Source: Cycas panzhihuaensis (lineage: Eukaryota > Plantae > Cycadophyta). From it: a stretch of DNA of 64,000 nt. Location of the stretch: NCBI GenBank assembly GCA_023213395.1, contig CM041465.1, forward strand, positions 167,221,741 to 167,285,740, read 5' to 3'. Below the pieces are notes generated by a model. The model made no database searches. It worked only from the letters and a program-made list of their open reading frames with translations, and had not been told where the DNA came from. Position numbers and translations under genes: made by a program. Shown piece by piece: positions 22,931 to 59,500 of the stretch. Numbering within the stretch: position 1 is the stretch's first letter; every line of letters begins with the position of its first letter.

Positions 22931-24829
22931 CAACTCCCTCTTACCTACCAGGATTGTGCACCTCAATTTAGACATGTGATGCTCAACATGTCAAGGTAAG
23001 TTAAGGTAAGTTGAGTTAATTTCATTTGAGTTAAGTTAGTATTATTTTATTATTAATTTGAATTCAGGGGTTGAGGAGTTTCCCTCCTCCCCCAAACTAT
23101 AAATGTTAAGGGGTGTACAACCCTGGTGTCTTTAGACACCACCTACTTTTGAGGAAGATTTGGAATACTCATGCTGCTACAATGGATTGAACAATAAGGC
23201 TCTCATGTGTTATGCTATTGTAATTGGTGATACACTGCTGTATTGATGCAATACTAGTTTGTACTTATTTGATATATGTTCTAACCTGTTAGTTTGCAAG
23301 CATATTTTCTATCACTTTGTATTAGAGCATTGTGGCTCCATATTATTTCCATCATTTGGTATCAGAGCTCAGTTTGGCTCATAGTTCTGCAAGTATATTT
23401 TCCTTCATTTGGTATCAGAGCAGGCGATTACTGACACCTTGATGTTTTGAAGAAGAACAACAGGATCTGCTGGCACTCTACAACAGTTTTTTTTACAAGC
23501 AATATATATTAACTAGATTTATTTTCTGAAAATTTTAGCAAGTTCTATATATTATTTCAGCATTTTTGACTATTATTGAGCTATATTTCTGGTTCAACAA
23601 ATATTACTGAGATCTATTTTCAGATTTGTGCAGATCTACAAAGGATTTTTCAGCAGCAAGCTATATACTTTCAAGTTTTATTCTCATATTTGAGTTATTT
23701 TCTGTTCAGATCTACAGATTTATCATATATTTTCGATTTACAAGTTTTTTATCTACTTATTTGTTATTTTTGCATTTTTAAAAGAGCATCGGCCCATACA
23801 AAAGTTATCAAGTTTTTCGAGATCTACAATTTATTACTTTAGATCTGCTATTTTTTTATTTCAATAAGTTTTCAATATTTTCTGTTATATTTGTTTATAT
23901 CTGTGATATTTTTTTTGCCATAGATCTGCTATACTAAGGCCAGATCTACAACATTTACATAATATTTTTTGCAGATCTACTGGGTCTCACTGCAGATCTG
24001 AGATTTTCTTCAAAGATCTGCAACTTATTACTTCAGATCTGCTAATTTCTATTATAAATCTGCTTATTGTATTAGTTTTTTCAGCATTTTATGCTATATT
24101 TAGCTCAGATCTACGTATTTTCATTATATTTCTGACTATATTTTTCAAGATTGTTACAGATCTATAGTTTTTTGGGCATATTTAGCCGCATGCAGAAGCA
24201 ATCTTGGAGAATGCACTTGGAAATTTGAAGAAGCCTGTTACAAATACGTTTTAGTTGCTCAACCGTCCGACGGAACATAGCTATATGACTGCTCGTTGAG
24301 ATTCTGACGAGCTCACCGATCTGCTGGAGAAGACGGATCTGGATTCCATCCACTGTGGAGGAAGATCTCCCGCTCAGAAGTTTGCTCTCCATACGGAACC
24401 AGGTTCTTCGTTTCCGTTTGTTTTATATTTTCAACATATAAATAAATATTTTGATATATGCTCTTTGATTTTCATCTTTGGATTATTTGCTGTCCTTAGA
24501 TCTATTGTTTGATTTTCATATATTTAACTCTGCCATTATATTATTCATTGCTTCCGTTTATCATATTTGTCTCTATTGTCTCTCCGTTGTTATTGGCCTA
24601 TGCTCCGGCCTCTGTGCCGCACACACCTGTTTCCATCTACTGTCTGAGCTCAATCCTCTGTATACTGTTATTGGCTCGTACTTTATACCTGTTATCCCTG
24701 TGCATTCTCACATTCGTCGCATATTCTGTTCCCGTTGATCACCATTGCGCATCCGGCATCTGCCCTTTGACATTCGTTCTACTTCATTGATTGCGTCCCG
24801 CTCCAGCTTTGCCTGTCCTCATTCCCGTT

Positions 24830-26682: not shown

Positions 26683-27447
26683 ATGGCGCAATTCCCCATT
26701 TTCAATGGCCATAACTATTCACTATGGTATGATACTATGCACACTTATTTTATTGAACGTGATCTTTTGAAGTATTTACAACATGAATTTGACCTTAGCA
26801 TTAAAGAAAACTTTAGAAAAGATAATGAAATTTTAGGTTTATTATTTTGCACTATTACTGATGATATTTTTTCACTAGTTTCTGAACTGACAACATCTAA
26901 GCCTGTTTGGGATTTATTGATTTCTACTTATGGGGGAGATATCCCTACTGTATTTGATGAAACTTTTGATGAGCATGTGAGACAGGTGACAGAACAGGTA
27001 GATCATGACGGCAACACCAATGAAGATTCAGATCAAATGCAGGACCACCTTGTTGCACAAGGATTTGATCCTCCATTTGAGGGGGAGCATCATGAAGACG
27101 AATCTTATGACATAGCGAAGAATGAACCTGGTGATATGACAACTGTTCGAAGCATAAAGAGTATAAAAGTTCAAGTCCAAATTACAGCTACTCATCTACT
27201 TTTGCATCAAGTTTCATCTACCTATAGTCTTCCTACATCATTCTATAATCAAGAGATATATGTGACTATAAGGGTGAGAAGCATTGACAAAGATCAAGTT
27301 TGGCATTTCAAAGTTTCTTTCAAGTACCAGTTCCACAAGTTCAAGGAAAAGATACAAGTATTCGTGCTGACATTAAGGGGGAGAATGTTGGGTGTAATGT
27401 CATCACTCAACTCCCTCTTACCTACGAGATTGTGCACCTCAATTTAG
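26683..27447 (+). CDS. Copia gag N-terminal domain fused to pol remnants, 254 aa, uninterrupted
   Basis: FPIFNGHNYSLW...KDNEILGLLFCTITDDIFSLV...SKPVWDLLISTY is copia gag. LVAQGF, MTTVRSI and QFHKFKEKIQV..LRGR resemble RT and RNase H end fragments. Reads through the PPT into the LTR. Confidence 0.75.
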   Translation: MAQFPIFNGHNYSLWYDTMHTYFIERDLLKYLQHEFDLSIKENFRKDNEILGLLFCTITDDIFSLVSELTTSKPVWDLLISTYGGDIPTVFDETFDEHVRQVTEQVDHDGNTNEDSDQMQDHLVAQGFDPPFEGEHHEDESYDIAKNEPGDMTTVRSIKSIKVQVQITATHLLLHQVSSTYSLPTSFYNQEIYVTIRVRSIDKDQVWHFKVSFKYQFHKFKEKIQVFVLTLRGRMLGVMSSLNSLLPTRLCTSI

Positions 27448-27881
27448 ACATGTGATGCTCAACATGTCAAGGTAAGTTAAGGTAAGTTGAGTTAGTTTCA
27501 TTTGAGTTAAGTTAGTATTATTTTATTATTAATTTGAATTCAGGGGTTGAGGAGTTTCCTCCTCCCCAAACTATAAATGTTAAGGGTGTACAACCACCGG
27601 TGTCTTTAGACACCACCTACTTTTGAGGATGATTTGGAATACTCATGCTGCTACAATGGATTGAACAACAAGGCTCTCATGTGTTATGCTATTGTAATTG
27701 GTGATACACTGCTGTATTGATGCAATACTAGTTTGTACTTATTTGATATATGTTCTAACCTGTTAGTTTGCAAGCATATTTTCTATCACTTTGTATTAGA
27801 GCATTGTGGCTCCATATTATTTCCATCATTTGGTATCAGAGCTCAGTTTGGCTCATAGTTCTGCAAGTATATTTTCCTTCA

Positions 27882-35600: not shown

Positions 35601-38600
35601 AAGACCTTGAGTATGATTATTATTAGAAGTATGAAGCCCATAATGGCTATCTACTTTATGAAGACTATTCTAGGTATGAAGGTTATGAGACATATGTCTA
35701 CCCTCCCAATAGTTCAGTTAACTTATATAAAGCCCCCATTAAATAAGGTTATTTTGATCACCCTCATACACACATGGGAAATCCATCCCTGGTAGTCTCT
35801 TTAATTGATCAAGAAGAGGTTCATGTTAGTCATGTTGCCCATCCACTTTCAAAACCTATGCTCACTAGGATTCCTTCTCCTATCCTTATCTTAGGCTATT
35901 AAGACCCCTTTCATCAAGATACCCACAATATAACGTTGTCTTCATATCTGCCCCTTGACTAACATCAAGAGAATCCTGATCCTCTTTCTCAAGAGCATCA
36001 AACCCTTCATGAAATTCACCCTCATATATTTAATGTTTTACCTTATCCTTTTCCTTCCCATCCTCCTATCCTGAAGGCACCCCCTATCCCACCTAGTGAG
36101 ATAGGGAACACTAGGTTGGTTCACTCCTAACCTTAAGTACTAGTTAATACCATGCAATGAGGACCTTAAGTTCCTCTTATACCCTTTATTTCATATGATG
36201 TTCTACTTGAGAGCTCTACTTAGGAACAACAACTTACCTTAGGTTACCCATATCAAGAATCCACATCACATTAGTTCGAGTATTCAAGACCTAGTAGGGA
36301 ACCATCCCTTGTATGTAGGTACAAGTGCCTTCACGTTACTTCATAGGTTCCACAAGTTAATAGAGACATCCTTTATTATGGTATCTCTTAGCCTCGTTAA
36401 AGGAATCCTCATCCCTTACCCTACCAAAATATGACATATAATGTGAAACCACCTCCTTCTCAATCTCATAAGGGGATTACACCTTTTGATCCTCCATACC
36501 CTATATATGATACCTATATTGGTGCATAAGGTATATTAGGAAGTTCTCATGCACATATTCCTTTTAACCAACACATGAACCAATAGTAAATTCTAAGATC
36601 TATAAGAGGGCCCACATTGTCCTATGGTCCTAGACCTTACTACCCTCATCAACCCTATCCATAACACATAGTTCCTCCTCTCTAGTACACCCCAACAACA
36701 TCTTATCCCTTAAATAGAAACCCATTATAAGCCTACCATATGGTTCACTCCTTATCATATACCTTCTTGTCCACTCTATTATGATTAACCCCCACATGGA
36801 ACTTCCATGGTTTATCAACAACCTCCTCCTCAACACTCTTCTATGTTGAGGTCTATAAGGACATTTTTAAATTACATGAGATCCCCCTTTCCACAAGAGG
36901 CCCTCCTCTCATCCATACCTTCTTTTCTTCTTGAATTACCCAAGTTTTTAGGGGAGCATTCACAAGATCTTACTAAGCATGTGTAAGCTTTTATATGTAT
37001 ATGTGTTGATTTCCTCCTCTATGATTATTTCATGATGAGATTGTTCCCTAAATTACTTTAAGGTGATGCCTTAAAGTGGTTTTATCATCTCTAATTTACT
37101 TCAATGTTTATATTCTAGTATCTAGTTGATGCCTTCATCAACTATTTTGACATTGCTAGGCCATTCAAAATGGGAAATAAGTCCCTCCTATCTATTAAAT
37201 AAAATAATGATGAATCATCCTAATATTACATGAGACAATTCTAAGACCTAGTTCATGTTTATCACTTTCACCTTGATTTAGGTCTCCTTTTTGACATTTT
37301 CACTAATGCATTAAGATCTCATATTTATTTAGAAGTGCTTAAGATTAGTCCACAAACCTATGAGGAGGCCATATATAAATGCTTAGCTATTGAAGCCTTT
37401 ACGATCCAAGAAGGAATTAAGAAGATAGGTAAGCTTAGGCTAGCTAAAGAATCAACTCTAGGGCCCAAACCTAATCAGGGCAATCATACAAATGATCATC
37501 TTGCATCTTCTATTAGGGCCCTTAATTATATTATCAACATGAAATTGCATGGTAAGAATCCTTCTACTTTTTAATAGAAGCAAGAAACCAAAGTTACCCA
37601 CTATACTAAGGGAAAGAAACACCAAGATCCTTCTCTTCCTTCAATAAAGAAAACCCCTTAGTGTTCTTATCACCAAACTAACACTCATGAGAGGGATCAA
37701 TATCAACTAATTTAAGATATAGGTCATAAGACCAAAACTACTAATAATCCTACATCTAAGCCAAATCAATAATAATTAATCCATAAATTCCCCTTGACTG
37801 AACATAATCTTAAGAATGCTAAGGGCAAAGATAAAGGTAAAGACAAAAAAATAATATGATTGATAAAGAGAGTATGAGCTCTTAACCAAACAAGAAATGT
37901 ACCACCTCATCTAAGGGAGGTGGTAAGCAAACTAGTAACCAAAACTAGATGCCTTTCAAAGGTAACGAGACTAAGAGAACAATTAATATAGTTGAGACAA
38001 CAAAAAATCTTGGTGTATCCAAATACTTTGAAGATTTTCCAATTAAAGACCTTGATTCTTTTCTTCTTATTCCTCCATGACCTATTCATTTTAATTCCAT
38101 TCCTTCTACTTCAAAAGATGGATCTTTCTCAATAGTTAATGAGTTGAAATCTATTTTTACTATTTATTAAAGAGTTGCCTAGAGTAATGTTAACTCCTAT
38201 TTAACACTTTAGGTATTTCTACCCCCAACTCCCTAATAAACCTTACCCTTTTATTTGATCCCTCTATTCTACCTAATGAAATGAAATAAAGCCCTAACAA
38301 CATTCCCCCATTCTACATTGAGATATATAAAGAAGACATTAATATTTAATGAGTCATTATTGATGAAGGTTCATTCATAAATATAATCCCTCTTCATTTA
38401 GTAGAAGACCTAGAAATTACTGCCTATGACCCTTGTGAGTGGATATATCAAGGGTACAATAAGAACCAAAATGTATCACTAGGGCAAGTCACTCTCCCTC
38501 TCACCTTAGAAAGGAAGATAATTATAGTTGACCTTACCATAATAAACATAGACTTGGAATATAAAATTATTTTAGGAAGACCTTAGATGAATCAAATATC

Positions 38601-41600
38601 CACTATCTATTCCTTCCTCTTTGGTAAACATAAGTTCATTTATGAGGGAGAATTGAAGGTGGTAAAGTAAAAACATGAACCTATTAAGTAATTTATTCCA
38701 TTAGTGGAAACTATCTTAGAGATAGGGGAGTCCTCTAACTCCTCTAAATATTTCTTTTAATTCTTAGGCCTTAGATAATACTTTTCCATTAAGACTCTTT
38801 CCACATCTAAATAGGAAGTTAAAGTAGTTAACATAGTATTCCATTAGGGGAAAGATTTTCATCACATCATTTTGGTGTGGAAACATTTCAAACCACTTTG
38901 AAACCTTTCTTGATTCCTACTCCTTTACAAGAGACTTTCCCCCTCCACTTTATAAGTTATTTGTCCAATCTTATTCAAATGGAACAAGATCTTAGTCATC
39001 ATGCCCTTTTATCTCCATAATAGGCTAATAATGATGATGGCATATTATAAAGTAATCTGCTCTTACCTTAAAAAACCACTTCCCTAAGTTCATCCTCTAG
39101 TGAACCTAATTTCATGCATGTCCTTTATTTACATCATTTGAACAATGCCTTAAACATCACCCTACCTATTTCTTACCCTTTGAAGCAAGCACCTTTATCT
39201 TGGGCTCTTACTTATTCATCTAATGAAGTAACTTATTATGTATCTCCTTTCCAAACTACTTGGTTCAATTGGTAGGGTGAGAAAATCCTCATGCATAGAC
39301 ATCCCAACCTCTCACCTCCATAAGGTAAAATGTCCTCTTTATATACCTCACTTAGACCAAGTCTAACACATAGGAGAGAGATCAGAGATGTTAATATAAT
39401 TACTACAATCTCTCTCCTAGTTAAGGAGACTATTCTAGAATATATTATATCATCCCTTATTTATGTATCCTTTCTTACAAATTATCTCTTCATTAGTAAA
39501 TTTAGTTTTCATCAGATTATGTAGTTAGATTAGGAATTTCTCAAGCAACTTGGTCTACTTTCATATATTCGCATGATAATAGACATCTTCATAACATAGG
39601 ACCATGTCTTACCTATGAAGTCACCTTCCTCAGATTTACCTCATTATTATCACTCTCAACCTAAAAGTTCTATCCTTAGAGACCTCTTCCATCTTAATCA
39701 TATTAAGAACGATGAGGTAATTCTTGAGCACTTAGTTGGAGCCTTACCCAACTTCCTCCTCAATCATCTCAAATCTAGTTTTGGTAAGCACTTACATGCT
39801 AATTCACCTTTGGCTAACTTGAATCAACCATCACATGATCCTCCACCTTTTATAAGCCCTACCCCTTCTAACTTTGAGAAGTGAAATTTTATGCTTATTA
39901 GTGAGACAACAAACATAAATTTGGAGATGGGTGAAGCTCCAAAAATAATCAAAGTGGGAGTAGAATACACCCTAGAATAAGTAAAATAACTCAAGGACCT
40001 CTTCCAAGAATTTGTATTAGTATTTTCTTGGGATTATGATGATATGTAGGGCCATCACCTTAATGTCATAGTCCATAATAGCACCACAATTCTAAGGGAC
40101 AAGCCTAAAAGGTAGAAACAAAGACCTATTCACCCTCATCTATCAACAACTATTAAAGAGGAAGTTGAGAAACTTATAAAGACAAGATTCATCAAGAGTA
40201 TTAACTATTCATAACAGGTCTCCAACATAGTTTCTATTACAAAAAAGAATGGATCAATTTAAATATGCATAATTTTTTTGATGTTAATGATGTCTGTCCT
40301 AAGGATAATTTCCTTCTCCTATTCTTGAATTAAATTTAGAGCTAGACTACTAGTTTTGAAGTCATATCCCTTATGGATGGTTTATTAGGATATAACTAGA
40401 TTCTAATATATCTTAAGGACCATCACGAGACTACCTTTACCACTCCATGGGGAATATTTTCCTACAAGGTCATTCATTTAGCCTTAAAAATGATGGAGCC
40501 ACCTACCAATAGGCTATGGGTTTTATTTTTCATGATTATGTTGGAGTGATAATAGTTTTGTACTTAGATGACATGCTTGCCCTATCCCATTTTAGGAGAG
40601 ATCATATTCAAGATTTGAGAACCATCTCTGAACAATGCCATAAAATTGACCTTTGTCTCAATCCAACTACATGTGTGTTTATTGTTACTTTAAGAAAGAT
40701 GCTAGGAAATATAGTCTCCCATGATAGTATTAAGGTAGACCTCAAAAAGGTAAGAGTTATTATCAAAATACCACCCTCATAAACTCAAAAATAAGTCAAG
40801 TCATTTCTTGGTAAGTTGGGTTTTCTATGGTAGTTCATTATAGACTTTGCATTGAATACCAAGCCCCTTATTAACCTTCTTAGAAAGGGGGCTTCCCTAA
40901 CTTGGAATTCACCTATTCATGAGTCATTTGATAGATTAAAGTAAGCATTAATCTTAATCCCTATACTTGCTCCTCCCCTCTTTGAAAAGTACTTTATCTT
41001 ATATACATCCTTTAAGAAAGAATATGAATTCAGAAGAGAATGAGTTATTCACTTTATAAGTAGGACTCTTATTGCCACTAAACTCAACTATTCTCCTTCT
41101 AACAAAGAATGTTTGTCCTTAGTGCTCACCACTAATAAATTATGCCATTATCTTCTTGGTAGTACCACATTCCTCATTATCTAATTTGACCCTATTTGGT
41201 TCTTACTCACTAAGAGCAATCTTACTAGATTAGTAGGTAAATGGGCACTCCTCTTATATGAATTTGATTTCAAAATAATTAATTACAAATATAAGAAAGG
41301 TATGGTGGTTACTAAGATGATGGAAAAAACACCTTTTTCAAATCCAATTAATGAGTCTATTGATGATAGGTTCCTTGAAGAATAAATCCTTCAAGTAGAT
41401 ACTATCCCACTAAAATAAAGATGGTATAAAGATATCAAGCCTTATCTCTTAAACTAAATCTTTCCTTCTTCACTTTCCTCTAGGAAGAAGAGGTGAATTA
41501 AAGTAATTACCTATTGGTATCTACTCTTAGATGATGTACTTTATAAGCATTCTTTTGATGGAATCCTATTAAGATACCTCTTATCTTTTAAGGCTCAAAA

Positions 41601-41655: not shown

Positions 41656-44600
41656 CTGTTGGCTATGGCATTCCTAGCACCATGCACATACCCACTTTCA
41701 ATCAAGCATTTATAGCCTCACCTAGTTTATGACTCATTCAATCTTATTCTACTAAGATTACCTCTTCACACACTATTTCCGCTATCATTTAGAAACCCCT
41801 TCACGTATCGCATACTATTGGATCTCATGGCATTAGGCCTCGCCCACCATCACCTAGAGCATCTAATGTGATTCCCTCATCACAACATATTTCTCATACT
41901 TAATTATGGAATACACATGCTTCGACAAGGCAATCATAACTATTGGGGACCCCTAAGCCTATTTCTTCCTCACATATTCCTCGGCCTAGCCCACAACCTA
42001 ATCCCTTTAACACCTTTAATTCAAGTTTCCTATAAAACCTCATACCTTAAACCAATTCTATGGTTAACCCCATAGCATTCCTCCTTCTACTCTTCCACTT
42101 CATGACATTCTACAATAACAATCGCAATCACAACAACTTATGCATTTATATATTCCTCATCCAACACCCTTACCTTAATGTCCCACTATGTTGAGGCCAA
42201 GGAGGTTGTTCCTAGACTATATAAAGTCTCCCTTTCCACGTGAGGTTTTGTTGTTACCTATGCCCTTATTCCTTCTTGAATTACCTAACTTTTTTGGTGA
42301 CTTATCTTAAAACCTCGCCTCTTATATACGAGCATTTGTACTTGCTTGCATAGACTTTATGCCATATGATTACATTATGATGTCTCTATTTCTGAAGTCA
42401 CTTCAAGGTGACACCTTGAAGTGGTTTTATCATCTTCCTTTGGCTTCAATTCTCTCGTTCTAATAGCTAGTTAAATCTTTTATCAACTATTTTGATGTAG
42501 AGAGACCATTTGAGTTAGACATTAAATCTTTACTTGCAATTAAATAAAATAATGATGAAACCTTAAGAGATTTTGTTAGGAGATTTCAAGATCAAGTTCA
42601 TGCTTGCCATTCATACCTTGATCCTAATTTGCTATTTGATCTATTCACCAATGCGTTGAGACCCCATGTGCATTTGGAAGTCCTGAAACTTGGTCCTCAA
42701 ATATATGAGGAAGTAGTTGACCGTTGTTTGTCTTTAGAGACATTCGAAATACAAGCAAGTATTAAGAAGGTTGGGAAACCTATACCTTTTAAAGATCTAG
42801 TTCATCCTACAAAGGTTACCCATCCTGAGCCCACATATGATCATCTTACTTCCTTAATTAGATCACTTGAGTGTATGATCAACACTAAGTTATATATTGA
42901 TGGTACATCTCCTACTCAATCCTCTCAAGAGACCAAAGTGATCCACTTAACCAAGGGGAGGAAGAAATAAGCTCCTCTCCCACCTCCTCCCTCATCTAAA
43001 AAGATAAAATGGTGCTCTTATCATCAGACTGATGCATATGATAGGAGTGAGTGCCAAACTATTTAAAATGCAGCCCATAATACAAATACTCAAGTAAATC
43101 GTTCTTCCAAGTCATCGTAAGACCAAATGATCCATAAGGATCCATTGCCCCTCAGTAAAGAAGATAAAGGCAAGGGGAAACATATACAAGACGATGAAGA
43201 CTAACCTTCAAGCTCTAATTTGTCAAAGAAGACTATCACTCCCACAAACGTTCAAATAAGAAGAAACACCAATCAACCCCATCCACCTCCTAAAGGTGGG
43301 GATACCAAGAGAACCATAAACATGGTGGAGACTTTAAAGAGTACAGGTCCATCTAAATCATCTGGTGATTTAATGGCATGTAATCCTAACTTTTTACCTC
43401 TAGTACCCCCCTATCCCATCAGGTTTAGGTCCATTCCTTCTAGTTTAAAGGATGGATCTTTCTCTTTGATAGAAGATTTAAAAACCATTCCCACGGGCAT
43501 ATCGATTATGGATTTAGTCATGTGTTGCCCTGAGTAATATCAAATTTTATTCGTTGCATTCAGAGTCCTTGCAGTAGCTTCTTCTCCTACTTCTACCCTT
43601 TCCTTTGATCTTGCTTCCCTGCCTGGTTGTTCTACCCATGCACCCAATGACATTCGACCATTTTACATTAAGATCATCAAGGATAATATCAATATCAAGC
43701 AGGTTATCATTGACGAATGATCATCTATTAATATGATCCCTCTTTGTCTTGTCAAGGATTTGGAGTTTTCTATCTTTGATCCATACGAATGGATCTACCA
43801 AGGGTATAACAAGAATTAAAAGGTGCCCTTAGGTCAAGTTACTCTTCCACTTACGTTGGAAGATAAGACAGTGCTTGCTGACCTTACTATCATCGACCTG
43901 GATTTAGAATACCATATCCTTTTGGGTAGACCATGGATCACCTAAATGGCAACAGTTTATTCACCCCTCTTCAGTGGACTCAGTTTCGTCCATGAGGGAG
44001 AACTTAAAATCATCAAACGAAAGCCTAAACCTATTAAATAATCAGTTCCTCTCATTGAGACTTTTGCAGAACCTGGTGAACCCTCCAACTCTATGTAGTA
44101 TTTCTTTCAGTTACTTGGTTTAGGATAATATTTCGCTATTGAAGCCCCTTCAACCCCTCCAAAAGTGAAGGATATGGATTTAGTCGAAATAATTCCTTTA
44201 TCTTCAGGTTCCTCATCTATTCATATTCCTTCTTATTTGATTGATCCCCTTTTGGTTCCTTCTTCTTCTATTTTAGAAGAAGAAATAACTTCTCGTTCTA
44301 TCACGCCTTATCAAGGTCCATCTCCAAGTAACTTTCTCAATACAAATCCTATTCACACTTGTTTCTCATAAGTTTTGTGCTTACCCTTAGGGGAAAACTT
44401 AGTGGCTCCTTCTTTGACCATTCATCTAGCAACTACTTCCTCAAGTATCATTATGCATGACTCACGTGTTGCTACTTCTTCATCTTTCTCTCATTCCCCT
44501 TTCTTTAAGACATGGTTGAATAGACATGAGAAGAAGATATTGTTGCATCAGCATATAGATCTAGTATCAAATGATAAAGATGCTAGTTTATTTGATACAG

Positions 44601-45970
44601 GTCAAGCTAGGTTTGGAACCTCCATTATAGTATGAGAAGCTAATTTCATTTCTACTATCTCGTTACTTTCCCACCCTTATTTGGACTTTCCTATATCTTT
44701 GCTTGTCTTAATATCTACATCTCACCTTGATTATGGCATGTATGATCAAGAGTTCAATCAAGTTTTTTCTTTAATTTGGGAGTTTGTGGATAAGACTATC
44801 CCCTTTTCTCAAGTGGCATCAATTATAGAGTTTATGTCTACTCCAAACTCTCTAGTTGGTCCTCTTCCATCTTCTTCTTCTTAATCTAAGAACCTTCGCC
44901 TCATCAACCTCTTTCACCTCGATTATTTTGAGAATGATGAAGTGATTGTTGAGTATTTAGTAGGTTCATCTCTTAGTTTTCCTTATGGACATCACAAGTT
45001 AGGGTTTTCTAAAGTTATAGTTGATCATTCTCAATCTTAGGAATCTATCTCTTCAATCAAACCTACACCTCCTCACTTCAAAGAAGGAAACACAATGCTT
45101 ATGGAACAAATCATCGATGTAGATTTAGAAATATAAGATACCCCTAGGATTATCAAGTTGGGAACTAGTTGTACTCCCTAAGAGATCACCTAATTTAAGA
45201 ATATCTTTTGTGAGTTCCACTCAGTTTTTGCATGGGACTATAAAGACATGCAAGGCCTAGACTCCCAAATAGTTGAATATAATATTACCATTATTCCTAG
45301 TCTAAAACCTAAATGAAAAAAGTAATGTCCTATCTATCCACGTCTCTCTCTTACTATTAAGTAAGAAGTGGAGAAGTTATTAATAGTTGGATTCATTGAG
45401 AGCATCGATTACTCCCAATGGATCTCTAATATAGTTCTTGTAGTAAAGAAGAATGGTACGATTCAGATTTGTATTGACTTTCATGACATTAATGATACAT
45501 GTCCCAAAGACAATTTCCCTCTCCCATTTCTTAATCAGATTTGGCACCAAACTATTAGTTTTAAGGTAATGTCTCTTATGGATGGATTTTCAGGATATAA
45601 TTAGATCTCTATTATACCTCTTGACTACCATAAGACTACTTTTACCACTCCTTGGGGCACCTTCATTTACAAAGTCATGCCTTTCTGATTAAAGAATGTT
45701 GGTGCAATATATCAGAGGGCTATGGTTCATATCTTCTATGATCTGGTTGGTAATATTATTACCATTTATTTAGACGATATGCTTGCCATTTCACGCAAAA
45801 AATTTGATCATTTGTGTGATCTCAGAACCATTTTTAAGAGGTGTAAAAAGTATCACTTGTGTTTAAACCCTTCCAAATGTGTTTTTGTCATTACATTAGG
45901 AAAGATGTTAGGAAACATTGTTTCTCAAGACAAGATTAGGATTGAACCCAAGAAGATTAAGGCTATACCT

Positions 45971-46205
45971 CTGCAATAAGGATAGACTATGGCTCTGAAA
46001 TTAGTACCTTTACCTAATGAGCCAAAACTATGGGCAAAGCTTATCTTCCTTCTGATTTCACCTTTGCAATGAGGATAAATTACAACTCCAAAGAATTGTA
46101 CCTTTGCCTAACCAGCTAAAACTATAGGTAAATTCCCTTCCTTCTTTACTAATCAGTGGCTCTCAGACCTGTATCTTTGCCTAATGAGCTAAAACTATGG
46201 GCAAA
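45971..46205 (+). repeat. Conserved-loop hairpin cluster 1
   Basis: TTTGCCTA-ATGAGCTAAAACTA-TGGGCAAA type x3, plus 2 short-stem variants. Confidence 0.8.
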
Positions 46206-47200
46206 TCTTCCCTACTTTTTCTAATGCTTCTTACCTTCATTAAACATTATGGTGTTTTTATAATAAATCCAGCCCATAATCGTGTAAACTACTTGCTCTT
46301 TCTAGCACTTATACTAATTGTGAGTTTGCCATTATTTGGATCCCATTTCCCTTTGAGTTCTATACTCAAAAGGGAATCTTTGCCCCAAGTTTTATTGTAC
46401 TTTCATCTTAGAAAGAGAAACACCTTCGTCAGATTCAAGTATCCCCTCATTTGCCAAGAGTTTACTTTCATTTGCTAGCTTGTTACCTTGTTGATTCAGA
46501 CCATACTTTTACTTGCTAGTTGGTTAATGTTGGGATTTTCTTTTTGGTCATATAACACCAACTGTTAATTATTTCTATTATCCTCAGTTCTTTTTATTAT
46601 TCCCTCATAATAGATACTCATTCTACTACCTTCCCTTCACACTTAGAGACACCGTGATTTTGATTTCCTTTTTGCTTTCTATGGTTTATTCCTTAGGGAG
46701 ATTTGCCTCTTTCCCTTTTGAGAATCTATTAAAAAGGAGAAATCCTTATTGTGTTGAGTAGAAGAGTTTCTTAAGAAGAAAATTATGATCCTGTTCTTAT
46801 GAAAGGTAGAAGTACAAAGTAAAAAAATGTAATAATTAAAAAAAAAAAAGAGAAAAAAAGAAAAAAAGTTAAAAGAAAGTAAAAAGTAAAGTTTATTGTT
46901 TTCATCCTCTTATGATCTAGGGGAAGTTGCCTAATGGCTTCGTCCCCACCTATCTATCTATAGGTTGGGTTCATTTAGATGAGTCATTTAGGATTTTTAG
47001 ATCTAGCTACTTGGGTCCAACATGGCCTCAGTTACAGTCAAACCCTACTTGACACTTTGATCATAATCATCTTACTTGGGTTCCTTATTCTTCCTTCACT
47101 ACAATTAGAGATCTACTTTTACCACCATCTCCTTACTAATTGATTTTTACATCTTCCTTCATCGATCATACAGTCTCTAAGTTTTGATCCTCTCATTCCC

Positions 47201-47602
47201 ATGGCATTGAGTATCTTCACTAATGGGGGTAGTAGAGGAAACCCAAGACTGTCTACTTTTACTTAGGTGGTTTATGACCAATCAGGAAGTCCTCTCCTTT
47301 CCATAGGTTTCTTCATACCTAAGGCAATCAATAATGAAGTTGAATACCTTGCAATTATAGGAGCCTTATTAGATGTCTCTCACTTTTACCTTGGACCTAT
47401 TACTTTGTATGCTAATTCTTAGGTTGTCGTTTATTAGTTGATTAGGATGTACTAGGTCCACTCTCCATGACTCCTTTTACATCATCAAGCCTTGTCATTA
47501 TTGTCTCTATTTGTCTTAGTAACCATCTAGTACATGCCTTATTCTTTTAACCTCGAAGCTAACACTCTTGTTTCCTCAATCCTTGATGATCGTGTTGATT
47601 GA
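47201..47602 (+). pseudogene. Stand-alone archaeal-type RNase H (aRH) ORF of element B
   Basis: MALSIFTNGGSRGNP..., AINNEVEYLAIIGAL, ANS*VVV, P..FNLEANTL match aRH motifs DG.SRGNPG, TNN.AEY, DS.LVV and PR..N..AD.L. Internal stops present. Confidence 0.85.
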
Positions 47603-47633: not shown

Positions 47634-47703
47634 TGGAATAAGTATAAACTACCACTTTAGAATGAGTATAAACTACCACTTTATGATGAGTATAAACTAT
47701 TGG
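47634..47703 (+). repeat. Three ~24-bp tandem copies of ATGAGTATAAACTA
   Basis: Seen directly; same loop motif as the hairpin arrays. Confidence 0.85.
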
Positions 47704-48594: not shown

Positions 48595-50720
48595 CTAATG
48601 AGATCCCTGAGGTACATCTGGATTTTCCCTCAGTCTCCTACTAGAAGTCTCCCCATGAGAGGACTCTCCTTTAGGTGGGAGATGGTGTAGCTCCTACTGC
48701 ACCATGCCAGTAGCTGATAGGGTATACCCCTCCCCTTCCTGAGCTAGTTTCATCCTCTGTAGGTCTCTCCTCTCCTCTTCACCTACCCTCAGTTCCATCT
48801 CTAGCCTCTACAACTCCATCTGCATGTCTATATACATGTCCTGAGCTCTTAAAGTGTGGTGATAGAAGTCTATCTAATGCCCCAGTAGTCTGTGATCCAC
48901 TACATTCTAAGCAGGCACCTCATCTAATGCTAGAACATAGGGGAAGATCACCTCTAACATCCTTTGCACCTCTCTCAAGGTAACTATCTCATCACCTATC
49001 CAATAGAAACATGTAATATATAGTTAATTCTTTGGAGAAGACAACAAACTTTAAAAATAAAAAGGAATCTAATATAATATGAGAAACTAATTAATCAAAT
49101 CGTGTACCTAGAGATCTGACTCTTGCTGGCTCTCTACCTACCACCTTGTTAGCTGGTGGTGCCTCTACTATCTGTGGCTCCTGATGAGTCTCCTACGTAT
49201 CTCCTCCCTTGCTAGTTGTAGCTCCTCCATCCCTAACCTTCTCATCAGTAAATCCTAGCTCCATACTCTAAATGAAGACCCCTCTCCTCTCTGCGGGTGC
49301 CTCACCCCCTTGTCTAAACACCTACCAACTACTACCTACTCCACCACTAGAGGAAGCACCTCCCCTACCTCCTTGTCCTACCTCCTCTCCCCTATCGGCA
49401 CCTATACTACCATGATCCCCTCTGTCATGACCTCCTCCTCTCCCTAGCCCTGCTACTGGAGCCTCCTTAGTTGCTACCCTCTCTGCAACATCTATCTCAT
49501 TATCTCTCCATATTGGGAGCCCATCATATGCATCATACACGAGTTGTCTCCTCATCATCCTGCTTAGTATGGGACTGTGAGTCATCCTTGGGATGATCGC
49601 CAGCCTATTGTGGATCCTCGATCTTATGTGCCACCTATTCATGCCTAGATCCATCAATGTCAGCTCCCCAGGTTCTCCCCTTGGCTGCATTAAGGGAATA
49701 TGATCATAAAGCTAATGCATTAATATCAAGCTATAAGAAAATCCACCTTTGCATATCCTCCATATCCTAGATAACTAGTGACTAATGCTATCTGCCACAT
49801 ACTACCCTTAGTTAATCTAGATCCCCTACTTGCATTATTATATGATCCATGTCCACTGAACCAGTATCCCCATAAAGTTTTATGTCCTAACAATCTGGTA
49901 TGTGATAATCAGAGTGATGATCCTCCTCACCACTAGAACTCCATCTGCCACCCTAATTGCCTTAATTGAGATATTGTGCTCATCAATCTAATTAATAAAT
50001 CTAGTCAAGTAGGTGTTGCATGCCATCTGTGACTCCTTGTTTATCACTCTGATCAAGCTATACTCTCTCGCCATGCCAACTCACTTTGAGAATATTCCCT
50101 GCATCCCGTGGGGTAATCTCCAGATCTCTAATACCATGAACTCTAAATACGTGCCACCCTAGTATCCAACAACTCACAAAGTCATGCAACACCTCATGCT
50201 CCATGACCAACAGGGTCAAAGCACTAGCCCTTGCTAGGCCACACGCTCGTTGGATACCCCATCCTACCTCATCTAGTTGACTCACTAACTCTCTGATGGT
50301 ATCTCCTTCATTCTCATGAGTATCAACTCTCTCCAAAGTAGTTTATAAAGAATAATATGTTAGCATTTACTCTGAGTCGAAGACCTCATGTAACTAAGAG
50401 AAACTTTCAAAATTTTAAAAATGTGATTGATAAATTAAAAAATGTAATTTCATAGTAAAAAACACAGTTTCACAGTGAAAAATGTGATTTCACTATGAAA
50501 AATACGATTTCACAATGAAAAATATGACTTCCTTAGATGGCCCAAAATAACAAAATTATGTTTTTCACTACTTTATCATGTTTTTCATTACAAAACTACA
50601 TTTTTAATATAGCACCTACACTTTTTGCACTGTATTATCGTATTTTCATCATAAATTTTAAAAAATAAAAATAAAAATAAACTACTTCACTCACTGAGTA
50701 CCTTACTTACTGCTCCATTA
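48595..50720 (-). pseudogene. Antisense spliced accessory gene of element B: plant mobile domain (PMD)-like N-terminus, Gly/Arg-rich linker, coiled-coil-like C-terminus
   Basis: VLHDFVSCW..VFRV..LEITPRDAGNILKVSWHGERV resembles the PMD pattern ALVERW..TF..MTITL.DV..ILGLP..G..V. GT-AG intron at 48996-49107. C-terminal exon homologous to 54834-55090. Confidence 0.65.
50438..50655. repeat. 20-bp tandem repeat followed by degenerate inverted copies
   Basis: AAAAATGTGATTTCACAGTG-like x4-5 (50438-50530), then TTTTTCA-containing reverse units. Confidence 0.7.
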
Positions 50721-51159
50721 TCTCCTGTCTCACATTATGGATCTCACCACCTAGCCAAAAGAGCTCAAAATCCTACTCAAATGAAGGAAAAACTCCTCAT
50801 AGAGTGTTCCTTTCTCCTCCTTCATCCTCGTGCAAATGAATCGATTTCTTTATCAACTTCCTTACATATAAGGGGCCCTTTCTAGCCCTTTTTAGCTCTT
50901 TTCGCCTATGAAATCATCCAAGCTAACCATTTAATCCATCAAAAGAAGGCATACTCCAATTTGATCTTAATTGTCTCCAAACTTATGATGATGTCTCATA
51001 AACATGTTCTTTTTTCATCTTTTGATAAAGTTCATGATATTAAACATTTGTTTGAGCTCTTTCTTTATTTTCTTGTCAAAATTTAATTGATTATTCAATC
51101 CTATTTTACCCAGTAACATGTTTACCTTCAATAATACTATAACTGTGAGCTTTTAAGTG

Positions 51160-51567
51160 TCTATTGATGAGTCTAAACTAGGACAGGATAATACACTCCA
51201 AACTTCTATCCACTTATTAATGAGTACAAACTATGACAAGAACATGCTCTGAGGCCTCCATACCTATTAATGAGCCTAAACTATGATAGGGATCCCTTTG
51301 AAGTCAATTATTAATGAGGTTAAAAGTAATAATCATCCTATGAAATCTCTCACCCCATTAACGAGGCTAAACTATGATGGGTTCACTCTAAAAAGTCACT
51401 TGTTAATGAGCTTAAACTATGACATTCCATTCTTTTTACCTCGACAGAAAGATTTTACTCTAAAAAGTCACCTATTAATGAGCTTAAACTATGATAGTCC
51501 ATCCTTTTTACTCTAGCAAAAGGATTTCCTTCTAATACTCAATTAATGAGAGATAAACTATGACCAG
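51160..51567 (+). repeat. Array of 8 conserved-loop hairpins with variable spacers
   Basis: Loop AYGAGNNTAAACTA; period about 44-72 bp. Confidence 0.9.
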
Positions 51568-52078
51568 GTATACAGTAGAGGCCCATCTAGTTTGTGGGTA
51601 TTTGGTTATGAAGTCCCATCCAATTTGTGGGCAGTAGATAGTGTTTGTTTAAGTCCCATCTAGTTTGTGGGCATTAGGTAATATTTTGATAATAGTAGGC
51701 ACCTAGTTCTTTGAGGTGAAGAAAACAAATATAGTGACGTTTATGAGTTGAATACCCAGTGTTTTTGGGTAAGTTGGTTGATGGTTAGTCATTTTGGGTA
51801 ACCTAATTAATGCACAACCCTTTTGGGCAAGAGATGTGAAGGACACCTCTTTTAGTCAAGATTACTCAGTCCTTTCAAGTAACCCTACCAATAGAAACTT
51901 CTTTGAATCAATTTGTAATGAAGATTTCACTCTACCATGGAGAAGTACTACCCTATCCTTCATACATTTCACTAGTTCCTATCGCTTTCACTAGAACAAC
52001 CAACATGCACATCATTGCCACCACTCACCATCCTATGTCTCTTTCTAGAATAGGAGCCTTAGGTGCTAAGGGGGCAAT

Positions 52079-54268
52079 TGTTTCACCAAAACAGGCCTCC
52101 TTAGTTGTATTTGGATCATGTTAATAAATTGATGCATGTTTATGGTTTTATTGATATATGTTAATTCTACTTAATCGATTGGGCCTTATTTTATTGAATT
52201 AATGTATGTTTTTTTTATTGATGAAATGTAATGAATGATGATATGGCTTATATTCCTATCATTATATTGATGATGTAAACTATGGCAACAAAGTTTTATT
52301 TTATGACAAACTTAACTTTGTACTTCCTTCAAAGTTGGCTATTTTTATCTTATTTTTGAGATTTCACCCACATTTTCATCATTTATCACTTTTTGGGCTT
52401 GTACTTAATGCATTTCACCTCATTTTGGGCCTGTTTACTATTTGACAAAGTCATTTTTGTGATTGGAAACTCACTAGATATCAACTTTTATCAATCTTCG
52501 GTCAAATTTTTACTTTACTGAAATTGCATTTTTCACCCTGTGAAAAATACAACCAATCATATTTTTAGAATAAAATCATATTTTTTTGTAGGTGAAAAAC
52601 ATAACTGATTACATTTCTCACTGTCATGCAATAGAAAATTAGGCCAACGTGCCAAAATTCTATATGTCGCCACCCAGATATGATAGGATTTAGTCCTTTT
52701 ATGTCCAGAAGTGTTGAGAGAATGTGGGTGGTTGAGTATTAGAGAAGAAGAAGTGATTCTTACTCTAGTTGTGAGATTTTGTGAATTTCTTTGAGAATTC
52801 TTGAGGATTGCTATTGTGGCTTTAAAGACTTGATTTTTTGAAGTCTATTGGGTGAAATCTCAAAGAAGTTTTGTTGCTATGTTGCTGCTACTCGGTTGTT
52901 GATGGTCTAAGCTTTTATTTTCTTGGATCTTCATCAACTTTTACTTCAAACTTCTCTTGATTTGGTAAGATCTTTCCTATTAGCTCTCAAGTTTATTTCA
53001 TAAAGTTTTGAAGGTGATTTTAGCTCATAATTATTTCTTTTCATTGGTTGATTATTGTCATACTCTCGCTTGGACTTCTGTTACTAAAATATATGCTGAA
53101 AGATCTGTCGTTTGTGGGGTTCCTTAAGGATAGACTATGGTGGGGCATGGTCATCTCTCCATCATACATCTAGTTACTTCTTCCCACTCTCTCATAACAG
53201 CCTATATTCTAGTTGGATTGCTGCTCTTGTTTGGCATTCTTTGGCTCTTGTTTGGCCTCTTTAGATTGTTAATGCTTCATTCTTTGCTCTTATTTTGAAG
53301 GAAAGTGTATGGAAATTTAGTCAAGTGAAAAGAAAACTGCCATTCTAAGGTGCTCGTTATAATAGGAAAGGAATACTTGTCTTACATCTATCATTACATG
53401 CACTTTTATTTCAAGTTAACTCTTACATTTGGAGAATTAAAAGTTGATGGTGTTGTTTGGTTAGAGTATTTCTGATTTTCAGCTTTCATATTAGGTTCAA
53501 GGATTCCTTTTGGAGCTCTTACTACTCCAATCATGATAGAGCCTCTAATTGGTCTTGCATGCATGATCATTGTTCAAATTTATGACCCAAACATCATCTT
53601 ATAGGTCTAAAAACTATTAGAAAACAATAGTAGTTTCCTTTAAGAACTTCTTTTTCTATGCATTATTTCATCACTTTTAAAAGAATTAGTTGCATGTATC
53701 AAAGTTAGACCATATTAACTAGTCTTGCATGTAGTTTAATCTCTTTTGAAAAGAAATTTGCATAAAGATCATTTGGTTACTTTCAAATTTTTAGTATTAT
53801 TATTTCTTTCAAAGTAAAGTGTGCATGTAGGAAAGCTACTTTATAGTTGCATCTACATCTTTTATTTTGGGAACAAAATAAAAAGGACTTGCATGCATAG
53901 TTTCTAGTTTATTTATTTGTGATTTCATTATTAAAAAATAAATAAATAAAAAGATTGATATGAGTTTGATCTTGTGGTTTCTTTGATTGTATTGCCTTAC
54001 TCTCTCTTGGCTTTACATCTTTACAAGAATATCAAGACCTAGAAACTTAAACAAGTCAAACCATTATTCCCATTAACTTACCCTCTCTTACATCTTAGTA
54101 AAACTCAAAAAGTTGAACCAATTATAAGAGAGGAGTCCCTCAGAAGGATATTGAAGTGTGGCTCTGAACTTAGAACTCCTTTGTCAAGTCATGTAGGTTA
54201 GTGGATTCTATCACCCCACTTCACATCCATACCTTTCGTCGTACCCACTCTCACTAAGGTAGACAACA
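52079..54268 (+). repeat. 3' LTR of element B (about 2.2 kb)
   Basis: Begins TG just after the PPT. End is at 54265 or 54268, where the interrupted gene of element C resumes. Confidence 0.65.
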
Positions 54269-55230: not shown

Positions 55231-56155
55231 ATCATAGAGATCAATGTATTTTGTATATATAGAGTGATAGGAGGGAGATACGAGGTATTTTTTAAGCCTC
55301 AACTATTTTATCATGAGTCGCATGAGTGACAAATGTACCATATTACCTTTGTATATGTATATATATTGACCACTTTTCTTTAAAACTTATATGTAATGAA
55401 TTATTAACTCTAAACTCTTTTCCCCCTCATTTCCATTTTAGTAAATTAAATATAATATACATTCATGAGTGTGATGGTCCATAGAAACATGCAATAATTT
55501 TAACATTTTCTTTTTGTCATTTTATATATATTTTTAATTTTTCACTAGTATGTACATGGTAGTTTATACTCATTTTGGAGTGTGAATAGGTTTTAAAAAG
55601 AAAAAAATTACGAGTAATGAAGGATAGAAAATAAATAAAGATAAAGGGAGTAAATAAAAGGCTTACTAATTCTATTTCTATAAATATAAAACCATTTAAA
55701 ATAAATGGTAATAGGTTTATAAAAGTAGAAGATGGAATACCATAAATATCTCAAAAGAAAAACTCAAATGATTCACATCATACTCCTGACGGATTATATA
55801 AATATAGTGTAAAATCCACATCCATATAATATATCATAAAGAAAACATTTTATTTACTGAGTAAAAGACTAATCTCACTTAATAAGCAACTAGTTTTCTG
55901 AGTATATTAGATTCCACATTGCCTTCTTCTAGGGACAAGAAGTTTTTAGGATCTTACCCCTTGCGAAGATCCTCCATGGACCAAGATTCCCATGTGGTTT
56001 TATCCTTTCAAATACTTCATTTGATTTTTAGACCTATAATCTTAACCTTTACACTACTTTAAATGTTATCTTATAAAACCAGTAGTTTATATACTTTATG
56101 GAGGGGTACTTTATACTCATTCTAAAGTAAGTTGCCCCTAGCCAAAAGATGAGAG

Positions 56156-56556
56156 TCAATCAAAGTAATCATCCAAGATAGAAAAGACAAGAGTTTTAAC
56201 TTCAGTATTAAGGGACTAAGGAACATATTGGATAATAACTGAAGAAAATAGTGATAATAATGATAAGGCCTGATGGTGAAGAAGGAGTTATGAAGAGTGC
56301 ACCTGATATATCCCCACCAGTTGGTAGACTACAACCTGAGATTAGAATATATGATGATGGGTCCAAGATAAGAGTGAGAGATATCAAATAAGGATCCTAT
56401 AATGGCAAAATATTTAACTTTATTATTAGCTGCTCTAGGTATAAATAAGGCAGTAGAGAGAAGAGGATTTCTTAATTGGTTATAGATCACCCAAGTAGCA
56501 GTAGAAGATATTGGGTTATCTCTATTACCTTTATCAGTGAATACACTTAATGCCAT
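56156..56556 (-). pseudogene. Stand-alone aRH ORF of element C
   Basis: MALSVFTDKGNRDNPISS..AANNKVKYFAIIGSL; same start codon position and near-identical length as 47201-47602. Confidence 0.85.
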
Positions 56557-59500
56557 AGGAAGATAGGACCAGTATTTGGAGATGGTGTGATCAATAAAGA
56601 AAGGTATAGGAATCAATCAATAAGGAGATGGTAGTGAATGAGATTAGTTCTAATTATTAAAGAAAAAAAAAAATCATAATTGAGATGATCATAATTAATA
56701 AGAACAAAATATATCAATCATGGTTCAATTATAGTTGAGGCCATGGTGGAGCCAAGAAGTTAGACCTAAAAATCCTGAATGACTCATCCAAATAAACATG
56801 ACTTATTAGATGGATAGTGGGGGATGAAGCTATCATGTGACTTGCCTTAGATTACAAGAGGATGATAATAATATGCTTTTCTTTTTTTTTTCTTTGACTT
56901 TTTTTTAATAATTTTTTACTTTTATTTTCTACTTTTTATAAGAACAAAGTCATAATCATCCAATTACAAAATTCTCTTTTACTCAATACAATAAGGATTT
57001 ATCCTTTTCAATGGAATACGAGATGAAAGAGACCAATCTCCTTAAGGATTAAACCATGAGAAAAAGAGGAGATCAAAATCATATTATCTCCAAACGTAAA
57101 GGGAATGTGGAAGAATGTGTATTCACTTCAAAATATAGATAGAGTAAACCAAGGATAATAAAAGTAACCAAAAGAAAGTAGTAGGTGATATATGACTAAG
57201 AAGGAATCCTTAAGGTGAAAGACTAACAAGTAGAAGTATGACCTAAGAAAATGATAAAATATCTAAAGTTGATAAACTAATCTCTTGTTTCGAGGATGAA
57301 AATGAATGATAGGGCTTAGGGGCCAAATTCTCTCTTAAGCACATAGTTTAAAAGAAAAGAAAATTAAAACCTCAAAGAAGAGAACTCACAATCAACGTAA
57401 ATACTAGAAAGAGCAAAAGACTTATATGATCATGAATAAGAACTTAAAGAAAGTAAGAATAGCTCAAGGAAATATGAGAAAAGACTAAAGAAATGAATTG
57501 CTCATAGTTTTAGCTTATTAGACAAGAAGAAAGATTTAGAGCCATAGTTTATCCCCATTATAGAGGTAATGAAGAGCACTACTAGGCATAAAACTTTCTC
57601 AAATATTGAGATTTCACTAGCTTTTTAAATTCTGAACTTTCTATTATTGAGATTCGATAAGCTCTATTATTCAAATCTTCAATTACCATGTAAGGACCAA
57701 CCCACTTAGGAGAAAACTTATGTTGCTTATTAGGGAGATATTCTAACTTTAACAGTTTATTGCCAACACAAAACTTCTTAGGCCTACGTTGCCTATCGTA
57801 AGAAGCCTAGACTCTAGCCTTAGATGCCATATTATTTTGCAAGGCTTGTAATAGAGACTCATCTAGTTTTCTGAGTTCCAAGAGGTGTGCTTCCCTTTGG
57901 AACTCTTCATTAGTAAATTATTTCAACGAGACATACAAAGAAGGAATTTCAACTTCTAATGGAAGAACAACCTCAATACCATAAATAAGAGATAATGATG
58001 TCATACTTGTAGCATTCCTAATGGAGGTTTTATAAGCCCATAATACTGGAAATAACTAAACGTGCCAATCTCTATGAGAGGTTGCAACCGTTTTAGCTAA
58101 AATCTTAGCTAAAGTCTTGTTAAAGGCTTCAACTTAGCCATTTGCCTGAGGGTGATATGGGGCTAACAATCTATGGGTAATATGGAATTTGTTGCATAAT
58201 TCATTGACATGGGGATTACAAAATAAAGTCCTATTATCAGTAATAATAATATCTGGTACTCCAAATCTACGAATGATATACTAAAAAATAAGAGTGGAAA
58301 CAATCTTTTCAGTAGCAGTGACTAATATAATGGCTTTGCTCCATTTAGTAAAGTATTGAGTTGTAGTTATAATAAACTTATGACCATTAGATAATGCTAG
58401 AAAGATTTGGCCAATGAGGTTGAAGCCCCATTAGGAAAAAGGCTAAGGTGAAATAATTGATTTTAATTCTTACGTAGGTTTATATATTAAGGTCACATGA
58501 GATTGATATTTCTAACATTGTTGTATATAATTATGAGCATCTTTAAATAAGATGGGCCAACAATAACCTATACGAAGAATACATTAGGCTATCGATTGAC
58601 CACCAAAATATTTACCACACATTCCTTTATAGGATTTTGTCAAGGCTTTAAGTGTTTCATCAATAGAAAGGTATTGCAATAGAATTCCATTAAAAGAACA
58701 TTTGTAAAATATATCGTCAAGCAAAAGATATTACCTAGTAGTAGCTCAAATTTGTCTTCTCTTCTTAGATGTATAAGGAGAAGGAAAAGATTGATTGTGA
58801 AGGTGGGACCTAATTTTTCCATACCATGGATCGTTAAATGGGATATCCTAGATATAGAGGATATGTTAATCAAGAAGAGTATCATCAATAAGTTATTTAG
58901 CAGGGTTAAGAAGAGGAGCATCAACCATGATCTCTACAATGACCATGCCCTTCTTAAAGCTTCTATTAACAATTTAAAAACCAAACTCTTGTAGCAACAA
59001 GGACCATTTACCTAATCATTCAGTAGGATTAGATTTGGTAAGCAAATATCTAATAGGATCAAACTAAATAATAAGGTAGAGCTTACTCCCAAGAAGGCAG
59101 TGGTATAACTTCTTAGTAGTAAATATTAAAGTAAGACATTCTTTTTCAAGAAGGGGATAATGAAGTTCAGCAGCCACTAAAGTCCTACTAAAAATATATA
59201 TGGCTCATTCTTTACCAAAGTCATCCTCTTATGTCAGCATACCTGCTAATGATTCTTTAGTAGATGAAGTATACATAATAGAAGTTTTATCAAACCTTAG
59301 GGAAGCAAGTATAGATGCTGAGATCAAGGCTTGCTTCAACTTATTAAAGGGTTCTTAAACTTGAGGAGTCCATTGTAAGTCAATGTATTTCCTCAAAAGA
59401 TTTATGATAGGCTTGGCATCTAAAGTGAAATTAGCAATGAAACATCTTAAAAAACCAAGTCTACCTAAAAAGGATTTAATTTGTTTCAACAATTGGCTTT

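Follow-up and report, generated by a model that had tools for sequence, protein, structure and literature searches.

A 64-kb window of the Cycas panzhihuaensis genome (64,000 nucleotides, the whole stretch of DNA analysed here) contains an array of eight small repeat units in which a near-constant core lies between two arms that change from unit to unit and stay complementary. The arms pair in one register, the same core recurs inside different stems, the units are abundant in related genomes, and the array occupies the region downstream of pol in a retrotransposon. We tentatively read the units as reiterated stem-loops of the sense RNA that would form a protein-binding platform and would have been expanded by template switching, an interpretation to which we give slightly less than an even chance. 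The evidence for selection on structure is mixed, and it establishes a selected RNA structure only partly.

Layout of the array and its host element

The eight units, U1-U8, span 51157..51570 on the + strand at a spacing of 44-72 bp. Each consists of a 7-nt left arm, a conserved core of 13-15 nt and a 7-nt right arm. The first and the last, U1 (51160-51187, +) and U8 (51539-51567, +), are degenerate in this copy. Between them lie U2 (51213-51240), U3 (51263-51290), U4 (51307-51333), U5 (51354-51381), U6 (51399-51426) and U7 (51471-51498), all on the + strand. U3 is among the best preserved: its arms (CCTATTA/TGATAGG) pair at 7 of 7 positions, and the predicted RNA hairpin has an energy of -5.8 kcal/mol. 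U5 also forms 7 of 7 pairs, has C-G at stem position 5 and ACGAG in its core, and reaches -8.6 kcal/mol. Eight units sharing the core A(T/C)GAG-NN-TAAACTA had been described in an earlier reading made from the letters of the window (hereafter the sequence-only reading). All eight are present with this consensus, and the six arm pairs which that reading listed were found exactly where it had placed them.

We assessed how well the parts of the unit are kept. The mean pairwise identity among the eight units is 0.85 for the core, 0.70 for the left arm and 0.61 for the right arm. A 20-nt core pattern with up to three mismatches gave 10 matches in the 64-kb window, where 0.37 were expected. The loop had been called a conserved 14-nt loop of near-constant sequence; near-constancy holds for its sequence but not for its length, which is 13 nt in U4 and 15 nt in U8. 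The spacers are heterogeneous. Similarity among spacers 1-5 is at shuffle level (z 1.5), whereas the spacers of U5-U8 are related to each other through a 72-bp higher-order repeat (51382..51535, +, 2.1 copies) that runs across U6 and U7 and has long spacers with a second 8-bp inverted repeat. The description of the spacers as mostly unrelated is thus accurate for the first five and not for the rest. Where the loop was to be set against the spacers, the core is clearly the conserved part and the first five spacers are near random. The core is far better kept than the arms and spacers, and decay does not account for that.

Several further repeats accompany the array. The second inverted repeat inside the 72-bp repeat (ATCCTTTT/AAAAGGAT; 51503-51527, +, and the homologous spacer 51430-51460) is used in the minimum free energy (MFE) fold of the array. 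Directly after the array (51580-51680, +) are three units of ~21 nt, each with a CCCAT/GTGGG mini-hairpin, and more CCC...GGG units follow to ~51840. A 20/40-bp tandem repeat occupies 50436-50523 (+), between the start of an antisense open reading frame (ORF) remnant described below and the array.

Self-comparison of the window revealed three decayed related elements with pairwise identities of 64-70%: copy A (36841-41579, +), copy B (41955 to about 49009, +), which carries the array, and copy C (63562 to about 54821, -). Copies B and C can be aligned across 4.1 kb. Pieces of the related copies matched the Pfam families RVT_1, RT_RNaseH, rve and SH3_Tf2-1, which identifies the host as Ty3/gypsy. 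Copy B retains a gag-pol remnant (41955..45976, +) that includes a fragment of the reverse transcriptase (RT; 45689-45976) and has lost RH-INT by a deletion at about 45961/45975. Because of this loss, the RT remnant abuts the first units found after pol. With neither RNase H nor integrase, and with the RT remnant joined to the post-pol region (45961-45976, +), copy B resembles a non-autonomous derivative. Copy C keeps a C-terminal integrase piece (SH3_Tf2-1; 57585..57806, -) that ends at the pol stop. For the gag piece we found 11 relatives, all of them short proteins, and none of the frames of the decayed gag remnants contained a CCHC knuckle.

Downstream of pol, copy B carries the remnant of a stand-alone RNase H that is aRH-like (47144..47419, +), with a homologue in copy C (56332-56616, -). 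This piece of 95 aa matched RVT_3/RNase_H clusters in the atlas with a score of 0.93 and had no hit in Pfam. An additional archaeal-type RNase H (aRH) is a mark of the Tat clade. In both copies the RNase H-like remnant is a separate unit outside pol, ~1 kb past the pol stop, and in copy C the interval from RH to integrase is too short to hold an additional RNase H. Remnants of an antisense ORF resembling the plant mobile domain (PMD) follow at 48782..50342 (-). They matched PMD in the atlas, and a Pfam search of the same remnants returned no PMD match. The main array lies 5.2 kb downstream of the pol end, on the same strand. The RNase H and PMD remnants lie downstream of the first units, and therefore two sets of units bracket an RNase H-PMD cassette.

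The array host is a dead plant Ty3/gypsy retrotransposon, probably of the Tat type, and the array is in its post-pol region, in agreement with the 3' UTR location that the sequence-only reading had given. Its more precise placement just upstream of the polypurine tract (PPT) was not borne out: the nearest run of at least nine purines followed by TG is at 52741-52753, ~1.2 kb downstream of the array, and we located neither a long terminal repeat (LTR) pair for copies A, B and C nor the 3' LTR and PPT of the array copy. Elsewhere in the window, two direct repeats that are 98% identical and 4.47 kb apart (22931-23407 and 27408-27881, +) are probably the two LTRs of one small, young element.

Recurrence of the core in other stems and other genomes

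The core is not confined to the array. Four units, V1-V4 (46007..46207, +), stand right after the pol remnant of copy B and have the same core in a different stem of 8-9 bp; V2 is degenerate. Two more, W1-W2 (57495..57568, -), come after the integrase stop in copy C, where W2 forms 6 of 8 pairs and W1 has no stem. These V and W units begin within about 20-40 nt of the pol end, W1 at ~17 nt after the integrase stop. The stems around the one core are of different types, CCTATTA/TGATAGG in the array and the longer CTTTGCCTA/TGGGCAAAG after pol. A third class is the family variant of U8 seen in sequencing contigs, with the left arm TGGTTA pairing with TGACCA. At stem positions 4-5 the three classes are set apart by transversions or a paired 1-bp shift. 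Such differences go beyond what C-to-T decay can produce. Compensation by transversion or indel is visible only between the unit classes.

Some copies of the core have no complementary arms. Three cores of 14 nt with a 24-nt period lie at 47638..47699 (+), and a single armless core lies at the homologous place in copy C (55560..55573, -). Because the core is conserved at these four places without arms, the core sequence itself may be what matters. An identical 16-nt string that resembles the first post-pol unit is present at 45972-45987 and 53118-53133 (+), the second occurrence having no adjoining integrase end.

Sequencing runs of several species, none of them recorded as RNA, contain parts of the stretch. 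We aligned contigs from four of the runs, representing three species, to it at 80% likeness. Between 12,000 and 19,600 contig records per run matched. The summed contig depth was >100,000 in the bins of U3, U5 and U7, compared with 10^2-10^3 in the flanks (element sequence left of the array). The tandem units vary in number and sequence among the contigs; in many contigs spacers are replaced and units are skipped or added. Depth is also high in the CCCAT/GTGGG mini-hairpin zone (51580-51680, +), and a summed depth of up to 76,000 in the bin 52004-52057 (+) indicates another abundant short motif there.

Differences between the window and the contigs are mostly transitions (~285 places, against 82 others, in run X1). 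Among the 40 variant positions listed out of 505, the majority contig state restores the common core at 51227 (C to T) and restores a pair at 51160 (T to C). The consensus of contig loose ends at 51536/51539 gives U8 the left arm TGGTTA, complementary to its right arm TGACCA, and the A-C mismatches of U8 in the window are therefore private decay. The same kind of consensus gives U4 the right arm TGATAAT, so that its outer A-T pair is a family feature. Since both recur in abundant contigs of other species, the stems specific to U4 and U8 predate the insertion.

Arm pairing and folding

We compared the arm pairing with that of column shuffles. In the 7-pair stem of the eight array units, 83.9% of the cells are paired against 76.2% in the shuffles (0 of 500 reached the observed value), cell counts that overstate the number of independent events because the units are related by duplication. 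When the 3' arm was slid by 1-3 columns, paired cells fell to 27-54%. For all 14 units the paired fraction was 70.5% against 57.3% in shuffles (0 of 500) and 27-47% when slid, and the covariation score was 0.394 against 0.238. The arm pairing in the array is tied to one exact register. Four stem pairs have changes on both sides among the eight units, and the T-G at stem position 2 is retained in 11 of the 14 units.

Intact units are predicted to adopt the proposed fold with energies of -5.8 to -8.6 kcal/mol, lower on the sense than on the antisense strand. Together with the T-G at stem position 2, these energies favour the sense strand. Only U3, U5, V3 and V4 beat ~95% or more of the shuffles in folding energy. 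The array as a whole has no extra stability compared with shuffles (z +0.87 and +0.88 on the two strands), and its MFE structure leaves the hairpins unused. Since the copies have decayed, this lack of extra stability weighs little. RNAalifold on the eight units recovered the same hairpin de novo with two additional inner pairs (AG with CU), at a consensus energy of only -0.9 kcal/mol and with a slightly positive covariation term; on all 14 units it returned no consensus structure. Scores of the units under a structured covariance model exceeded those under a sequence-only model by 12-19 bits, a gain that is only indicative because the structured model had been trained on these very units. Neither model found further convincing copies of the unit in the 64-kb window. 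The earlier claim of a structured RNA therefore stands in part: the sense-strand preference agrees with it, but the whole-array energies, the weak or missing RNAalifold consensus and the existence of armless cores do not.

Explanations and known parallels

Under the reading we prefer, the array would be the variable tandem-repeat zone of Tat-clade Ty3/gypsy elements between pol and the 3' LTR, with a repeat unit built around a small stem-loop in the sense genomic RNA. The stem would comprise 7-9 bp, closed in every case by A-U and then U-G. The 14-nt loop, AUGAG-NN-UAAACUA, may be narrowed by the two possible inner pairs, leaving NNUAAA as its tip. One set of units would directly follow the pol stop and another would occupy the opposite end of the internal region, flanking a cassette made up of the sense stand-alone RNase H and the antisense PMD gene. 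The reiterated loops could then offer multivalent docking for a particle or host protein, the likeliest roles being to bind Gag/nucleocapsid in packaging or to serve the export or stability of the RNA. The RNA fold in vivo, the selective upkeep of the units and a binding partner are what we infer here. Copy number and spacers would turn over as the reverse transcriptase switches templates between units. In a broader and rather doubtful form, the post-pol arrays of the Tat lineage would be selected copies of a fixed-loop RNA stem-loop that acts as a multivalent packaging or export signal, and the repeats would serve as recombination joints for the gain and loss of RNase H and PMD cassettes.

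A neutral origin has to be weighed against this. The array could be a tandem repeat of a duplicated chance palindrome in which C-to-T and G-to-A decay on both strands mimics compensation, an account that we consider possible but fairly unlikely. Of the five compensated cells (double changes) within the array, four are C:G to T:A transition pairs, and the arm mismatches are mainly A-C. To simulate neutral change, we scattered 10 changes in the left arm and 15 in the right arm, the numbers observed, randomly over a star tree. With 78% transitions the p values were 0.04 for compensated cells and 0.01 for paired cells; they were 0.09 and 0.05 with 90% transitions, and 0.16 and 0.13 with 100%. Because a neutral, transition-biased model comes this close for the compensated cells, the array alone is no proof of selection. 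At stem positions 4-5, the pattern of U5 and U6 would arise from self-complementary CpG decay in half of all cases. The dominance of transitions in the comparison with the contigs and the weak or absent folding support also suit neutral decay. What it leaves unexplained is that three stem classes surround one core and differ by transversions or paired indels, that the core is kept so much better than its surroundings, that the unit-specific stems of U4 and U8 were in place before the insertion, and that pairing is so sharply register-specific. The step from compensatory stems to selection, as the sequence-only reading took it, thus finds its support between the stem classes, whereas the changes within the array are mostly those that decay would yield.

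Two other accounts dispense with a selected RNA stem-loop, and we hold each of them to be improbable. One places the function in the DNA: the core of ~20 bp would be a duplex site for a PMD-type or host protein, iterated along the element, and the complementarity of the arms would be incidental. Such sites could work as repeated enhancer or promoter elements of the antisense gene, which starts ~0.8-1.2 kb away. The conservation of the core both with and without arms fits this account, as does the fact that, on the minus strand, the array precedes the antisense PMD remnant; the antisense proteins of Retand are predicted to bind DNA (PMC11963269). Duplex sites do not, however, predict arms that change and yet remain complementary, or a constant T-G position, and the second set of units directly follows the pol stop, at a distance from anything that looks like a promoter. 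The other account makes the hairpins a mechanistic by-product with no binding role, which pause the reverse transcriptase, seed template switches and mark the sites of duplication, deletion and cassette capture. It draws on the units on both sides of the cassette in copy B, on the variation of unit number and spacers among the contigs, and on the template switching already proposed for such arrays (PMC7004042). It gives no reason for the persistence of a 14-nt loop in different stem classes and in cores that have no arms. The by-product account is compatible with a protein-binding platform and does not exclude it.

We compared the array with known systems. Dispersed packaging signals of ssRNA viruses and the NC-binding stem-loops of retroviruses consist of many weak stem-loops with a shared loop motif and variable stems, and zinc-knuckle nucleocapsids bind GNG motifs. 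By analogy, the Cycas loop would expose a G-A-G triplet comparable to GNG. Unlike those signals, the Cycas array is 3' rather than in the 5' leader, and no knuckle is detectable in the decayed gag remnants. The MPMV constitutive transport element and the RSV direct repeats are structured RNAs between the last gene and the 3' LTR that act on unspliced RNA. The Cycas array may parallel them as a reiterated RNA, structured by prediction, in the same interval, whereas its units are much smaller and more numerous and have no sequence or Rfam similarity to them. The label 'CRISPR-like', attached to the array by the sequence-only reading, is an analogy and nothing more. The array shares with CRISPR arrays the repeat-spacer look and partly palindromic repeats. 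It differs in being part of a eukaryotic retroelement of plant type without cas genes, in having non-identical repeats with varying arms, and in having spacers that are diverged copies of one unit or replaced filler, some of them homologous.

The closest parallel is within the Tat lineage itself. A tandem array in the interval from pol to the 3' LTR is characteristic of Tat/Ogre/Retand elements, and such arrays are documented to have seeded satellite DNA in plants. The Tat-clade arrays adjoin pol or lie towards the 3' LTR, a placement that the Cycas units probably share. Like the Cycas array, they have units of 8-100 bp and vary in copy number among copies. Unlike it, they are not described as having a hairpin or a shared core, and the antisense protein there is TRP28 where the Cycas copy has a PMD-like one. 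The RNase H differs in place from that of Ogre/Retand, being stand-alone after pol rather than between RH and INT. The tandem arrays in the 3' UTR of Ogre/Tat elements are a source of satellites, and their origin has been ascribed to abnormal strand transfer or template switching (PMC7004042). They were treated as hypervariable by Macas 2009, as cited in PMC7004042. These repeats (Macas 2009; Vondrak 2020) resemble ours in their Tat lineage, family-specific units and very high unit abundance, and differ in that they are described, as far as these citations convey, as varying in sequence and length and not by a conserved structural core. Hairpins are not mentioned in the accounts of Tat/Retand arrays that we consulted, including PMC7004042, and our literature search found no description of a hairpin with a constant core.

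The kind of region is therefore known and the reading as constant-core hairpins is apparently undescribed, in a literature that leaves the origin and function of these arrays unexplained. A conserved core in covarying stems, found at either end of the internal region and abundant in several species, is a concrete and testable candidate for the role of the arrays. Core units at both ends also suggest how accessory cassettes move. If the neutral account were true, the array would be a warning case in which C-to-T decay of palindromes imitates compensatory evolution.

We searched for the motif in databases and considered other identities. The search of Rfam that the sequence-only reading had proposed (Rfam 15, E up to 10) returned four sub-threshold chance matches, none of them on the array; a sub-threshold C/D snoRNA match lies at 45970-46063. 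K-turn, C/D-box, hammerhead and SECIS motifs were checked by eye and rejected, because neither the spacing nor the covariation at stem position 3 agrees with any of them. A coding repeat was dismissed on account of stops in the cores of V3, V4 and W2 and of unit spacings that are not multiples of three, and a TATA box because TATAAA occurs in only some units. We found no complement of the loop in the rest of copy B, which leaves it without an apparent kissing partner. A two-unit pattern had no match in viral and metagenome contigs. The single-unit pattern matched 48 loci there, once each, and we treated all of these as chance. Two of the loci (L036 and L020) are isolated hairpin look-alikes without arrays, and many of the 48 resemble bacterial stop/ribosome-site/start contexts.
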